The position numbers and the translations under genes are program-made. Shown here piece by piece: positions 10,229 through 55,370 of a stretch of DNA of 64,000 nt. Origin of the DNA: Octopus sinensis (lineage: Eukaryota); the NCBI RefSeq assembly GCF_006345805.1, contig NC_043014.1:3658001-3722000 (forward strand), read 5' to 3'. Within the stretch, counting starts at the first letter, position 1, and each line of letters opens with the position of its first letter. Under the pieces are notes generated by a model. That model was not told where the DNA came from. It ran no database searches and saw nothing but the letters and a program-made list of their open reading frames with translations.

Positions 10229-10727
10229 TCAGTATTTACTGCACACAACGCAGGTTAATTCTCGACCATTGACATACGGTGGACATGGCAATGAACCACA
10301 AGCAGCCTGAACGAAATATAATAGAGCTCCATTTTCGTTTCTGTAACCTGCTGGATCAGCTTCTGGTGCGTAGTCCATACACACATACTCATGTCTGCCC
10401 TTATGCTTATAATACTCGGTCATCAAATATCCCGAATACTCAGCTGTCCAACCAGCGTAACACTTTGTCCTGGCTGGTAACATCATAACGACAGCAGGTT
10501 GTCGTGTCAAACAGACAGCGCACGGAACGTTGTGCTCATGAATTGATTCAGCGTTAGCAAAAGAAAAGAGTTTATTAGTTGGGTAAAAATTTAGTTCATA
10601 TTCACTACCATAAATATAACCTCCTTCTTCAACTTCTGTAGTATAATTGGCCAAAATGGGATCGTTGGTAGACACAAGAGATTACTTCCGCCACCAGTAT
10701 GAGAATAAAATTGTCCACCAACCACAC
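10229..10727 (-). CDS. Copy A terminal exon, short-chain collagen C4/NC1-like domain; 1-nt deletion near 10667
   Basis: TTCTAG acceptor, then GVVGGQFYSHTGGGSNLLCL-(frameshift)-NDP...HNVPCAVC...CGSLPCPPY...ELTCVVCSKY stop; 499 nt versus 500 nt in copy E. Confidence 0.85.
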
Positions 10728-10979
10728 CTAGAATTGGTAAGAATAAATCAAGTAAAAAAGATGTTAAGCAAAATTATATATGAAATAACAGAAACATTCA
10801 TTACAATTTTTCACTTAAAAGAAGTCATGTTTAGTCGCGTGTGTGAACGAATGTGGTGGTGTATGTGTTAGTGTTTATGTGTGTAAGCAGTGTGTTGAGG
10901 TATGTATGAGATCGTAGCTGTGCGTTTGCCTTCTCATCATATGTATATATATATATATATATATATATATATATGTACT

Positions 10980-11394
10980 CTTTTTTTCTTTTTCTTGTTT
11001 CAGTCATTTGATAGCGGCCATGCTGGAACACCGCCTTCAGTCGAGCATCTCGACCCCGGGACTTATTATTTATAAGCCCAGTACTTATTCTATCGATCTC
11101 TTTTTCCCGAACCGCTAAGAAACGGGGACGTAAACACACCAGCATCGTGTGTAAAGCGATGGTGGGGGACAAACACAGACACACAAACATATACACACAC
11201 ACACAAATATATATATATATATACATATATTCGACAGGCTTCTTTCAGTTTCCGTCTACCAAATCCACTCACAAGGCATTGGTCGGCCCGAGGCTATAGC
11301 AAAAGACACTTGCCAAGATGCCACGCAGTGGGAATGAACCCGGAACCATGTGGTTGGTAAGCAAGCTACTTACCACACCGCCACTCCTGCGCCT
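10980..11394 (-). mobile_element. tRNA-derived SINE (family 2), full length
   Basis: Head AGGCGCAGGAGTGGCGGTGTGGTAAG...GGTTCATTCCC, internal CA tract and CATGGCCGC tail. Confidence 0.75.
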
Positions 11395-51717: not shown

Positions 51718-54700
51718 CTAGAATTGGTAAGAATAAATCAAGTAAAAAATATTAAGCAAAATTATATATGAAATAACGGAAACATTCATTACAGTTTGAC
51801 CCTTAAAAGGAGTCATGTTTAGTCGCGTGTGAACGAATTGTGGTGTATGTGTTTATGTTAGTGTTTATGTAGTGTAAGCTGTGTGAGTATGAGATCGCAG
51901 TCGTGCGTTTGTCTTCTCTTCATGTGTGTGTGTGTGTGTGTTTGCGTGTCTTTGTTTTTGTGTGTGTGTGTGTGTGTGTGTGTGTACGGGTAAGTATTTG
52001 TTGTTGTGATGTGTATTGCTTGGGGTAGATGTTTGTGTGTGGATGTCAATAAACGGTGAAAGGAAAGGGATTTTGTTACGCATGTGGTCGTGATTTCCCG
52101 AAATGGAAAAGATGTCGTTCACGTTCGAACGGGAAAATTGTTGGTGATGGGAATTGCATGTGGTTTGAGTAGAACAATACGAGAGACGGTGACATGCAGA
52201 GAACTGGTGGGTAAGAGGGGATGAAATACTGTTTAGCCGACCATACGGGTGTGGCTGGCTATATCCATCGGTTTGTCTCGGACGAGTCAGGCCTACCACG
52301 AGACGGGCCTAACACATACTATAATATTATGATCACAGAGATTTTATTTCATGCAAAGCATGAACTGAGGTGGGGTGAATTTTGAAGCTCATTGATGGCG
52401 TAGTGCTTAAGAAGAATGGACAGCGGAGAGGCGACCGATAAAGAATATGTGTAGGGTTTATAGAGAGCACATTCACAAAAGATGTGAGGTTGGTTGGAGA
52501 AGATGTGGGAAGCAGTAGCTTTGAATTGGATGTGCCGGTGTACCTTACAAAGATACACTGGACAATTAATGAGGCGAGGTGTTTCATGAAAAGAGATAGG
52601 TTGAAGTGGTAGGTTGAGGTGGAGAAGAATAGTAGTGCAATATGTACTCATTTGTGTTATCTTAGTGGTAATTCATCCCTCCACATTTTGCATAATACAT
52701 ACGACCCTAAGTTAGCTTTGTCCATTAGTTACAGTGTGTGGTCTGTCCAGTCCACATGTACATTCTGCGTTCACTTCATTAACCATAAACATTCATTCAT
52801 CAATTCTAAGAGACCTTGTTCAATGTAGTCTATAACTACAATCAATAGACTCTCTAGTTAATGATAGTCAAGTGGCCACTTTCAGCTCTGGTCACTCACG
52901 TACAATACCACCATCCGTATCCAGTCTAGTCCCTATCTATAATTTAAGGTAGTTAGACAACAACCTTTTCACCTGGTCCATAGTAGACAACATTTAAATT
53001 CTAATTTGACCAAATACCTACAAAGGAGTGAGCAGTCTTGTGCAGTCACTATAGGGTCTATAGGTATCGTTTCAAACGTGATATATCACATGATTTGCTT
53101 GAAGGTGTGTGAGAGAAACTGAAAGAGAGGTGCCGACACGAAGAGAAAATGAGAGGAATAAAAAGAGAAGAAGAGAAAGATAAAGAGAGAAAGAGAGGAC
53201 ATATTTTTAACTAGTCATTATCACTAGCTTTGAATATTTTTCTTCTTGTTTTATAAATCATAGCAAAACATACAGGTACAGTGTCTCCCATTTGAAACTC
53301 AATTCGCAAGTGCACCTTCCGTATGGACTGCATATGTACGACGGAATTCCATAGTTATGATTAAATTTTCTTAGATGAAGCATATCAGACCCCTCAGATA
53401 TAGTTTGACCTAATTTAATATATATATATGTGTGTGTGTATGTGTGTGTGTGTGTATGTTTGTGTGTGCGTGTGTGTGTGTGTGTGTTAGTGTGTTTGTG
53501 TGTGTGTGTAACACTCTCTGTTTGGCCCTCGAATTAATATTAATTTCAAATAAGCTACAAAATAAATCTTACAGCCATGTCAGATTTCAACAAAGTCCCA
53601 TAATTTTTCCTATTGTAATGGCGGGTTGCATATGCAGCTGCGCATGCTCTGTACAGCTTAAACACATGGCGGTCGTTTTAACTGTCTAATTATGCCGTTG
53701 AATCAAAAGATGAATTTGAAGATCTACCAGCGTCCGTATTCTCTGCAATTGTTTACGATTTACAACCAAGAAAATATTTGTAATCTAGAGAAGCGAATGC
53801 AGATTTACCCATCAGGCTAATAATAGTGGGATAATAAACATTAATAATCTTTAATCTTTATTGCAGCTTGATGCTGTTAACCGAAACCTTCGTTTATCTA
53901 ACAAATATTCGACACACTCCAACATACTGTCATGTATCCTATTGGATATAACGTGACGGTCACAACATCTCAGCCTTCTTACACACAGCATCCGTGCTTG
54001 CCCTGACTATATTTGCTCTCTTTACTCTCACTTTTATGGGTGTTGTATTCGTTTCGCATGAAATGTATTCAGCTTCTAGGATCCATCCTTTCTTCGGTTC
54101 TGGTATGTTTACGTAGATGAGTGAAAGAAATCGTCGTATTTGATGTTCTCTGCTGCTGAAATGAGACAATTTTTCTGGTTGATTTCCTTTCTCATTCTTG
54201 TATATCAGCGTTTAGTGTATGATGTGAGTGTTCTGTGCATAGAGTTCCATTTTGTCATAATTTGTGGAGAGGTGGGAAGGTTGTGATTTAGATTTAGGTT
54301 ATAAGTTATGAGGTAAGAATTGAACGGAAAGCTTCCCTGATTAATAAAGGCAAATAAAATGGTTTGTTTAGAAGTAATTGGTTGTTGTTGTTGAAGCGAT
54401 CATGTGTTTTCTGTGTTAAATAATGTGGTGGTTCTTTGTCATTGTCAGATTCCGAGTTGTAATTTCAAAAGTAAGATGTCTGAGATAGTAGCGTCGAGTA
54501 TTAGATGAAAAGCTGATATAATTCTATGGTGGTATTTTATTTGGGGTTTGTTGAATCATGAGACAGAAGACAAAATACTGTTAAACAAAATAACATTTTA
54601 TTTCAACGATAAGTTTGATAAACTGAAATCTTACAAAATGTTTTCTAGAATCATTCCGACAGATTTAGATTTTTCTTGTTTTTGAGATATTTCTGGCATT

Positions 54701-54870
54701 CTACGTCGCCTCTTTTGTATTGTTTGAATATCTTCTGTGAACTAGTACAACAGTTTATTGTAACGATAGACATACTTTAAAGAATATATTAGGTAACAAA
54801 ATTGAAAATTTTATGTTATATGTTGAAATTCACAGAGATATTTTCATATGGAACCGAATTTAATTTATAT

Positions 54871-55370
54871 TCAATATTTACTGCATACAACACAGGTTAA
54901 TTCTTGACCATGGACATACGGTGGACATGGCAATGAACCACAAGCAGCCTGAACGAAATATAATACAGCTCCATTTTCATTTCGGTAACCTGCTGGATCA
55001 GCTTCTGGTGCATAGTCCACACACACATATTCAAGTCTGCCCTTGTGTGTATGACGTTCGGACATCAAATATCCTGAATACTCAGCTGTCCAACCAGGGT
55101 AACACTGTGTTCTGGCTGGTAACATCATAACAACAGCAGGTTGTCGTGTCAAACAGACAGCGCACGGAACGTTGTGATCATGAAGTGATTTAGTGTTAGC
55201 AAAAGAAAAGATGGTATTGGCGTCGTAATCTTGTAGTTGATATTCACTGCCATAAATGTGACCACCTTCTTCAACTTTTGTAGTATAATTGGCCCAAATG
55301 GGGTCGTTAGGTAGACATAAGAGATTACTTCCGCCACCTGTGTCGTCGTACCATTGTCCACCAGCCACAC
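54871..55370 (-). CDS. Copy E terminal exon, intact short-chain collagen C4/NC1-like domain
   Basis: Uninterrupted 500-nt exon GVAGGQWYDDTGGGSNLLCLPNDP...LTCVVCSKY stop, 9 Cys, TTCTAG acceptor. Confidence 0.9.

Follow-up and report, generated by a model that had tools for sequence, protein, structure and literature searches.

The spongin-type NC1 domain is the end-domain of an old family that is widespread in invertebrates and related to collagen IV. It has been described as a variant of the collagen IV domain that has seven shared and three own Cys residues, lacks the HSQ motif and the swapped hairpin, and was modelled without the domain-swap region (PMC5395295). In collagen IV the SM motifs are all found in the equatorial layer of the domain, which clips the trimer and joins two trimers front to front, and the polar layer with sheets I and I' is the stable core of NC1 (PMC6211539). 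In particular, the SM1 (residues 37-45) and SM1' (residues 144-154) hairpins defined by Casino et al. face the central tunnel, where they form a barrel of alternating strands (PMC6211539), and where two trimers meet, Glu40 interacts with the chloride-switch residue Arg76 (PMC4878091). Here we describe a 64,000-nucleotide stretch of octopod DNA (contig NC_043014.1, positions 3,658,001 to 3,722,000; hereafter the window) that carries a tandem array of genes for a spongin-type NC1 domain, whose copies differ mainly in a few short segments of an otherwise conserved framework.

The window has about 38% G+C, is eukaryotic in character and contains few long open reading frames (ORFs) and abundant microsatellite blocks. 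With its single intact ORF as tblastn query, five minus-strand copies (A to E) of a 165-codon terminal exon were found, and the upstream exons were located with a full-length Octopus homologue as query. The genes form a head-to-tail series that repeats about every 13.5 kb, beginning with a partial gene 0 and continuing with A, B and C and then E, which is without exon 1 in the window (Table 1); from the unit offset, exon 1 of gene E is expected just past the window end, near 64.6 kb. Of the four exons in each gene, the first encodes MDFAQLSRNISQRY, followed by a hydrophobic segment of 19 residues, SISSLIAFGVLLVLTIVIL, and by ...KSKT in front of the donor GTAAGT, and exon 2 encodes the charged linker NRFISKKSLDDKPDDTP; exon 3, with the product KPG.GSLYTRWGRTTCPPYS.LVYDG, and exon 4, which supplies the remainder of the protein, together give a domain of about 190 residues. 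Copy D lies within a 3.65-kb tandem duplicate (49555-53201 against 53199-56860, 99.2% identical) that ends short of exon 3, and its coding sequence is that of E except for two 1-nt deletions; as a near-identical duplicate of E, it is not an independent paralogue.

A protein search with the product of gene E returned 402 proteins at E<=0.001. The top matches are named short-chain collagen C4-like and come from Octopus, Argonauta, Mercenaria and Branchiostoma (E 1e-96 to 1e-41, about 99% coverage), the closest being proteins of that name from O. sinensis, O. vulgaris and O. bimaculoides with at most 87% identity (87% to an O. sinensis protein), and clear homologues extend to Argonauta, bivalves, annelids, cnidarians and amphioxus. 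The flanks of the O. sinensis and O. vulgaris loci, too, reach an identity of about 93.6% at most, and by these values the window would come from a related octopod. By sequence comparison, the family is that of the spongin short-chain collagens ('short-chain collagen C4') and the domain is a spongin-type NC1, a remote relative of the NC1 of collagen IV. Of its ten Cys residues, one is encoded by exon 3 and nine by exon 4, and an alignment of 87 sequences shows six Cys columns without any change and a further two that are at least 90% conserved. Neither exons 1-3 nor the octopod full-length proteins examined contain a visible Gly-X-Y run. Collagen repeats (PF01391) occur in seven of the 87 aligned homologues and, in the main protein match list, are annotated on Branchiostoma proteins only; besides these repeats, Pfam gave no domain family in any of the 87 homologues, none of which matched the Pfam C4 family (PF01413) at E<=1, and the exon-4 domain itself matched no family at E<=10.

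A remote relationship with collagen IV is suggested by structure and profile comparison. A PDB search with the single sequence gave chance matches only, and the best PDB profile match was the NC1 of Drosophila Viking at the CxVC...CPxGW..GY junction (E 0.24). An AlphaFold2 model of exons 3 and 4 of gene E was obtained with a mean predicted local confidence (pLDDT) of 91.3 and a predicted template-modelling (pTM) score of 0.86, and the top 20 Foldseek matches of this model were all collagen IV NC1 (E 1.5e-4 to 9e-3, probability up to 1.0), with template-modelling (TM) scores of only 0.20-0.28 and rmsd values of 15-18 Å. With TM scores this low, the likeness to NC1 is a local one and does not extend to a global superposition. 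The two halves of the octopod domain are themselves homologous (hhalign of the N-half against the C-half profile, probability 92%, E 6.3e-7 over 90 columns), and in an alignment with an approximate sequence of human alpha1(IV) NC1 the E values were 1e-4 (junction), 1.8e-4 (C-half) and 0.006 (N-half).

By eye, the N-terminus and hydrophobic segment of exon 1 resemble a signal anchor, which would stand in place of a signal peptide. In the O. sinensis proteins P0001, P0006, P0007, P0010 and P0017, a second type of 5' exon (...SLLDLLCCPETVNIVLPSKT) replaces the hydrophobic MDFAQ... exon, and some family members may therefore be without a membrane anchor. An N-Y-T glycosylation sequon at exon-4 residues 27-29 (about 55282-55290 in E) directly precedes a variable segment at residues 29-37; it is found in 20 of 21 octopod copies, its third position being unreadable in B through an assembly indel, and it fits an extracellular domain. 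The ink proteome of O. vulgaris includes a peptide attributed to a short-chain collagen C4-like protein (PMC10142993). This peptide, of 24 residues, matches the conserved C-terminal framework DDGGAVLYFVQSVCGSLPCPPYVK and was the sole mention of the family from a cephalopod in the literature searched.

The window had been read, from its letters alone, as a set of paralogues whose differences cluster in three short patches of a domain with a conserved Cys framework and C-terminus. All the patch strings quoted in that sequence-only reading are present in exon 4 of the minus-strand copies, at residues 5-9 (patch 1), 44-54 (patch 2) and 103-108 (patch 3); patch 1, for example, reads QFYSH in A, QWFDH in B, QHYSH in C and QWYDD in E. 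When A, B, C and E are compared, variation is found at 17 of the 22 patch positions and at 24 of the 143 positions elsewhere (Fisher p 3e-8, a post hoc value given that the patches had been chosen by the reader), and a boundary-free test, in which the variance of sliding-window counts was compared with 5000 permutations, gave z values of 4.5-4.7 (p<0.001). The clustering is thus real, but two further segments, residues 29-37 and 59-64, are about equally variable, and the number of variable segments is five and not three. Within patch 2 the diversity is found mainly at residues 44-47, the remainder being largely two-state (YPTNKLF or YD.NTIF). The conserved part was recognised correctly: in 21 exon-4 copies (A, B, C and E of the window, 15 from O. 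sinensis and two from O. vulgaris) all nine exon-4 Cys are invariant. The last 45 residues hold five variable positions. In this C-terminal part dS is 0.10-0.36 and omega, the ratio of non-synonymous to synonymous change, is 0-0.38; as synonymous change continues there, the conservation reflects purifying selection.

The described richness of the patches in aromatic, His and charged residues was also borne out. At the hypervariable sites Tyr, Phe, Trp and His make up 38% of residues, as compared with 14% in the framework, and Asp, Glu, Lys and Arg 31% as compared with 13%, whereas aliphatic residues, Cys and Pro together account for 10% and 46%, respectively. Such a composition fits exposed interaction residues.

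To place the segments in the domain, we used the internal repeat, the model and the collagen IV alignments. In the half-to-half alignment QWYDD of patch 1 pairs with SERHT of patch 3, and by this alignment the two patches are copies of a single loop, which in either half comes right after the long strand. Patch 1 falls in the loop 32-43 of the AlphaFold2 model, after the strand 21-31, with a pLDDT of about 95, and patch 2 is in the part of the model with the lowest confidence (pLDDT 78-83). Equivalences with collagen IV were taken from weak hhalign alignments to the same approximate alpha1 sequence. These place patch 1 at alpha1 residues 39-43 (SM1), patch 3 at residues 144-151 (SM1'), patch 2 at residues 83-93 (the beta8-beta9 loop of SM3), residues 29-37 at 69-76 (the beta7-beta8 loop) and residues 59-64 at 98-103 (the beta9 region). 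The five variable segments would then lie in the equatorial layer and the invariant parts in the core, as far as such weak alignments allow.

The arrangement of the loop motifs among copies points to exchange between them. The pairwise homoplasy index (PHI) test gave a z of -9.3, with none of 2000 permutations as low (p<1/2000), and segment-specific trees improved the log-likelihood by 374 units. TEYYKH is found in combination with four different patch-1 motifs (QFFDH, QFYSH, QYYDH and QWYEQ), SSLHAE and SGHYGH are each common to otherwise different copies, and QLDLYPTNKL occurs in four copies. The O. sinensis copies Os_L005a and Os_L005b are identical over their last 195 nt and have 17 differences in the first 120. 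The closest O. sinensis relative of E, Os_L004c, differs from it by 2.1% in the framework and by 19 nt in all, nine of which are in nt 310-327, and Os_L004c matches Os_L005d exactly over nt 295-326, yet the two have 50 differences overall; by these comparisons, patch 3 of Os_L004c is carried by a conversion tract of roughly 18-33 nt. Taken together, the sequences indicate that the loop motifs are a limited set that is moved between tandem copies by short gene-conversion tracts and placed in new combinations.

Selection was examined in the 21 exon-4 copies with a home-made codon-model likelihood test of the fixed-effects (FEL) type, in which alpha is the synonymous and beta the non-synonymous rate, with separate neighbour-joining (NJ) trees for three segments in view of the recombination present. 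The framework gave an omega of 0.24 (p 5e-25 for omega <1) and is therefore under strong purifying selection. The patches gave 0.52 for patch 1 (not significant), 0.40 for patch 2 (below 1, p 0.006) and 1.70 for patch 3, the only one above 1 (p 0.2), and pooled they gave 0.67 (alpha 2.09, beta 1.40). Two simpler procedures were rejected: pairwise Nei-Gojobori estimates among the four window copies (patch omega 0.25-0.58, with inflated patch dS) were too noisy with about 11 synonymous sites, and parsimony counts on one global NJ tree (patch dN/dS 0.72) overcount changes under recombination. Simple dN/dS in such arrays is confounded by gene conversion.

These values bear on the proposal of the sequence-only reading, in which the patches may make up a single diversifying surface that binds a ligand, like that of immune lectins; as a rival explanation this would entail ongoing positive selection, of the kind known from such lectins and from pattern-recognition receptors of other types. 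The differences are clustered and of the right composition, the non-synonymous change in the patches is about 6.7 times the framework rate, and against the gene-wide synonymous rate beta is 1.43 in the pooled patches (p 6e-4), 2.29 in patch 3 (p 2e-6) and 2.59 at residues 44-47. Residue 103 stands out among 75 sites at p 0.009. The large tandem family with its cassette exchange is likewise in keeping with the proposal, this being the pattern of many immune gene families. The predicted excess of non-synonymous change was therefore found as a concentration in the patches, but synonymous change is doubled there as well, the pooled omega and those of patches 1 and 2 are below 1, and residue 103 does not reach the Bonferroni threshold of 0.00067, so that positive selection is not demonstrated and a lectin-like mode of it is not shown. 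The raised synonymous change is attributed to the strongly recombinant alignment, and recombination or older ancestry, and not point-mutational selection, would account for it.

Presumed orthologues do not support an ongoing diversification either. Gene A and its closest relative, the O. sinensis copy Os_L003c, whose presumed orthology is based on 93.6% identity over 7.4 kb of flank, differ at none of 37 variable-segment residues, none of 22 patch residues and five of 127 framework residues; gene E and Os_L004c differ at five of 22 patch residues, and in a by-eye comparison the O. vulgaris copy Ov_L002a and Os_L005d have five residue differences, two of them within the three patches. With the loops mostly retained from one presumed orthologue to the other, nothing here points to a running arms race. 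SCOP places the collagen IV NC1 under the C-type lectin-like fold. As for the likeness to immune lectins, Pfam gave no lectin or other recognition-domain family for the domain or its 87 homologues, and no lectin is among the 50 Foldseek matches listed. We thus regard diversifying selection of the immune type as unlikely.

A second alternative is that the loops have no special function and are simply tolerant of change under relaxed constraint, the mosaic being a by-product of gene conversion that homogenised the framework and left old divergence in the loops. Across distant phyla, variability peaks at the same positions (Spearman 0.61), and by this comparison it is in these loops that the whole family tolerates change or adapts. 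Patch omega values of 0.4-0.7 are compatible with weak constraint, and the strong recombination, the raised synonymous divergence of the patches and the position of patch 2 in the least confident part of the model are likewise in keeping with it. Set against this, gene A and Os_L003c have changed in the framework and not in the variable segments, identical motifs persist across several paralogues and species, the bias of composition towards aromatic, His and charged residues is non-random, and the non-synonymous rates of patch 3 and residues 44-47 exceed the gene-wide synonymous rate. Both the conservation between presumed orthologues and the biased composition thus weaken a purely neutral reading, and we consider it improbable to much the same degree as selection of the immune type.

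A further question is whether the copies are functional at all. As assembled, exon 4 is intact in E only, and the frameshifting indels number one in A (a 1-nt deletion), four in B (three deletions and one insertion), three in C, two in D and none in E; exon 3 of B has another 1-nt deletion. The patch strings quoted from the letters span these frameshifts in four of the five copies and must have been read across indels. Dead pseudogenes or sequencing error, giving a pattern without functional meaning, would explain the frameshifts in four of five exon-4 copies as well as the stop and broken exon 2 of gene C and the exon-2 defects of genes A and 0. The D/E duplicate is informative in this respect: blastn gives four mismatches and 20 gap openings, and MAFFT gives 17 indel events, of which 15 are one- or two-base deletions in D, with 12 mismatched columns that are mostly due to realignment next to indels. 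Indels thus far exceed true substitutions, unlike the normal divergence of duplicates, which indicates an indel-error-prone assembly and suggests that the 3.65-kb duplicate is an unpolished long-read segment or a falsely duplicated haplotype; the error rate derived from D amounts to about two expected errors per 495-nt exon. One-base deletions, of which this assembly has many, mimic pseudogenes.

After gap correction all five exon-4 copies read through without stops. The private changes of the window copies are seven synonymous and six non-synonymous, as compared with 18 and 38 in the other copies, so that the window has no non-synonymous excess, and all 17 copies from O. sinensis and O. vulgaris are intact. 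On the strength of these three observations, most frameshifts in the window are probably assembly errors. In addition, A has the same patch motifs as an O. sinensis copy that is intact, and the ink peptide described above, which matches the conserved C-terminal framework, argues against decay of the family (PMC10142993). We therefore rejected the equation of frameshifts with dead genes for most copies and retained it for gene C, in which the AGA (Arg) codon present in exon 3 of other copies is replaced by an in-frame TGA and the similarity of exon 2 ends after ...GATAAACCCGA with no donor; together these two defects make C probably a true pseudogene. No relaxed constraint was seen in exon 4 of gene C. 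In gene A, the acceptor and first codons of exon 2 (15633-15705) are missing, about 357 bp of units B and E (59971-60327) being absent, and an in-frame cryptic AG lies a few bases downstream of the missing acceptor. As an account of the variable patches, decay or artefact is in our view very improbable.

In light of these results, the tandem array, the collagen-less head of the spongin NC1 type, the five variable loops, the exchange of loop cassettes by gene conversion and the constrained framework are well supported, and a cassette-shuffled specificity surface is plausible. The best explanation as a whole, which we hold with little more than even confidence, is that the array encodes NC1-like heads in which the exchanged loops are the specificity determinants. 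The hydrophobic segment would act as a signal anchor, so that the domain is extracellular and its N-terminus points to the membrane. If the remote homology with collagen IV NC1 is followed, the counterparts of the variable loops would be SM1, SM1', SM3 and the beta7-beta8 element, all in the equatorial layer. In collagen IV, trimer closure and the head-to-head docking of a second trimer take place through this layer, and in the octopod heads it would be the membrane-distal face; a membrane-distal interaction face follows only if exon 1 does encode a signal anchor. The loops may thus determine the specificity of the interaction face of the head and decide its partner, either another NC1-like head, by co-assembly or docking in trans, or an external ligand, and the diversity would be made combinatorially by cassette exchange and then kept by purifying selection.

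Several observations weigh against this explanation. Patch 1 and patch 3 motifs mix freely, contrary to what is expected of one tightly co-adapted interface, and the agreement of variable positions across phyla is what merely tolerant loops would give. The global superposition on NC1 is poor (TM 0.2-0.28), and the N-half alignment with collagen IV is weak (E 0.006, probability 6%). Most copies of the window are not intact as assembled. The spongin NC1 is reported without the domain-swap hairpin, so a trimer like that of collagen IV is not assured (PMC5395295). As to the kind of partner, the mixing of patches 1 and 3 and the binding-site-like composition lean slightly toward modular recognition, and the homology with collagen IV leans toward assembly.

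Going further, octopods might have made a cell-surface code out of the collagen IV-type NC1 'recognition module', in which dozens of tandem genes supply membrane-anchored collagen-less heads. The loops with which collagen IV selects its chains and docks trimers head-to-head would here be exchanged as gene-conversion cassettes and give combinatorial specificities for cell-cell self-recognition or innate immune recognition. Clustered protocadherins, which are also expanded in octopus, are the model for such a self-recognition code. We consider such a code a long shot.

Table 1. Positions of the NC1 genes, the variable patches of gene E and other features in the window.
Feature	Position	Strand	Details
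Gene 0, partial	about 845-7360	-	exon 1 7217-7360; exon 2 about 844-896, with 1-nt insertion; exons 3 and 4 outside the window
Gene A	10229-20279	-	exon 1 20136-20279; exon 2 remnant about 15633-15672; exon 3 12722-12796; exon 4 10229-10727
Gene B	24279-34748	-	exon 1 34605-34748; exon 2 29584-29635; exon 3 about 26696-26769; exon 4 24279-24776
Gene C (probable pseudogene)	37209-46944	-	exon 1 46801-46944; exon 2 remnant 42311-42352; exon 3 40193-40267; exon 4 37209-37704
Copy D	51220-51717	-	exon 4 alone, without own exon 3; inside the 3.65-kb tandem duplicate
Gene E, exon 4	54871-55370	-	last coding exon, 165 codons and stop; from ORF, tblastn, AG acceptor and reading frame
Gene E, exon 3	56881-56958	-	KPGPGSLYTRWAERTTCPPYSNLVYDG; the domain begins here with its first strand and first Cys; 3-nt insertion, in frame, when compared with other copies
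Gene E, exon 2	59926-59977	-	NRFISKKSLDDKPDDTP linker; from homologue search
Patch 1, gene E	55342-55356	-	QWYDD; loop after the long first strand of the N-terminal half
Patch 2, gene E	55207-55239	-	QLQDYDANTIF; residues 44-54
Patch 3, gene E	55045-55062	-	SERHTH; loop after the long strand of the C-terminal half
Microsatellite and low-complexity blocks	16200-17600, 17780-18110, 19060-19830, 20870-22480, 30200-31730, 32730-33250, 35200-35600, 43490-44400, 45720-46160, 47240-49560		TG/CA-rich and TATG/CATA-type
Conserved intronic ORF-like segments	13666-13959, 27679-27954, 41063-41341	-	kept between units
Conserved intronic ORF-like segments	15069-15395, 29052-29348	+	kept between units

The in-frame 3-nt difference in exon 3 of gene E gives WAERTTC, in contrast to the WGRTTC of every other copy and homologue, and adjoins the first Cys of the domain. 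Introns and spacers are filled by the very long microsatellite and low-complexity blocks, which produce many spurious ORFs on both strands, and the introns also contain ORF-like segments that are kept between units and include ...PRCALKSPCRTNDFTPNISKAEVNLLR... and ...NCRYKRSEAPARGFDSQMKRAFH...; these gave no Pfam match and may be remnants of a mobile element. Six other ORFs of the window matched no Pfam domain family. On the O. sinensis chromosome CM016876.1, clusters of the family were sampled at 3.97-4.17, 5.24-5.35 and 6.52-6.55 Mb (loci L001 and L003-L006), a spread of 2.6 Mb, and in the 274 kb scanned of L001 and L003-L005 the exon-4 copies number 16, including one at the edge of a locus. 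In L004, two divergent exon-4 copies lie 3.2 kb apart (17020-17514 and 20242-20733), an arrangement like that of D and E. The NCBI gene models in L001, L003, L004 and L005 are 32-86 kb long and run across three to six exon-4 copies, which could be alternative terminal exons or the result of read-through models.

For the octopod architecture, the tandem arrays, the pattern of loop cassettes and the mapping onto SM elements, no description was found in the literature searched. The octopod branch appears to have dropped the collagen helix and gained a putative membrane anchor, and it has multiplied into arrays, the sampled ones lying between 3.97 and 6.55 Mb on a single chromosome of O. sinensis. 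Its variation is concentrated in loops that match, by weak alignment, the elements used by collagen IV for chain selection and trimer docking. Should the choice of partner be set by these loops, the encoding of NC1 recognition could be studied in this family as in a tractable natural experiment, and the family might also be a new surface-recognition repertoire of cephalopods.

Among systems that are not homologous, the C1q/TNF-like trimeric heads with variable apical loops, which are expanded in molluscs, share the concept of a compact beta-rich head with a collagen stalk in relatives and with loops of the distal face for specificity. The fold is unrelated, no C1q match was found in Pfam or among the Foldseek matches listed, and the octopod likeness is one of concept only. 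The peptide-binding residues of MHC and the snail FREPs are examples of tandem families with gene-converted binding loops. As in those families, a conserved framework with few hypervariable segments and motif sharing is accompanied by a strong recombination signal and by raised synonymous and non-synonymous divergence in the variable segments; they differ in not being homologous to the octopod family, in which no omega >1 passed the tests.

The spongin short-chain collagens are true relatives, with a homologous C-terminal NC1-type domain (E 1e-40 to 1e-96 in molluscs, annelids, amphioxus and cnidarians), and the ten octopod Cys fit the seven shared and three own Cys of spongin (PMC5395295). 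Unlike them, the octopod proteins have no Gly-X-Y, appear to have a signal-anchor-like N-terminal segment instead of a signal peptide, and are encoded in large tandem arrays with exchange of loop cassettes. From the collagen IV NC1 (PF01413; PDB 1LI1, 1M3D, 5NAX), the octopod domain differs in having no Pfam C4 match, in its TM scores of 0.2-0.28 and in the shorter length of each half. The aligned octopod positions are also without the Met93/Lys211 cross-link, the Arg76/Asp78 chloride switch and the HSQ motif: by the weak alignment, no Met, Arg or Asp is found at the positions of these hexamer residues, and the Lys211 loop has no counterpart. The two nevertheless share a build of two tandem homologous halves and the CxVC...CPxGW..GY junction motif, and the only significant structural neighbours of the octopod domain are NC1 chains. 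In collagen IV, too, the chain-specific variable elements are loops of the equatorial layer, SM1, SM2 and SM3, which govern protomer formation and docking (PMC6211539).

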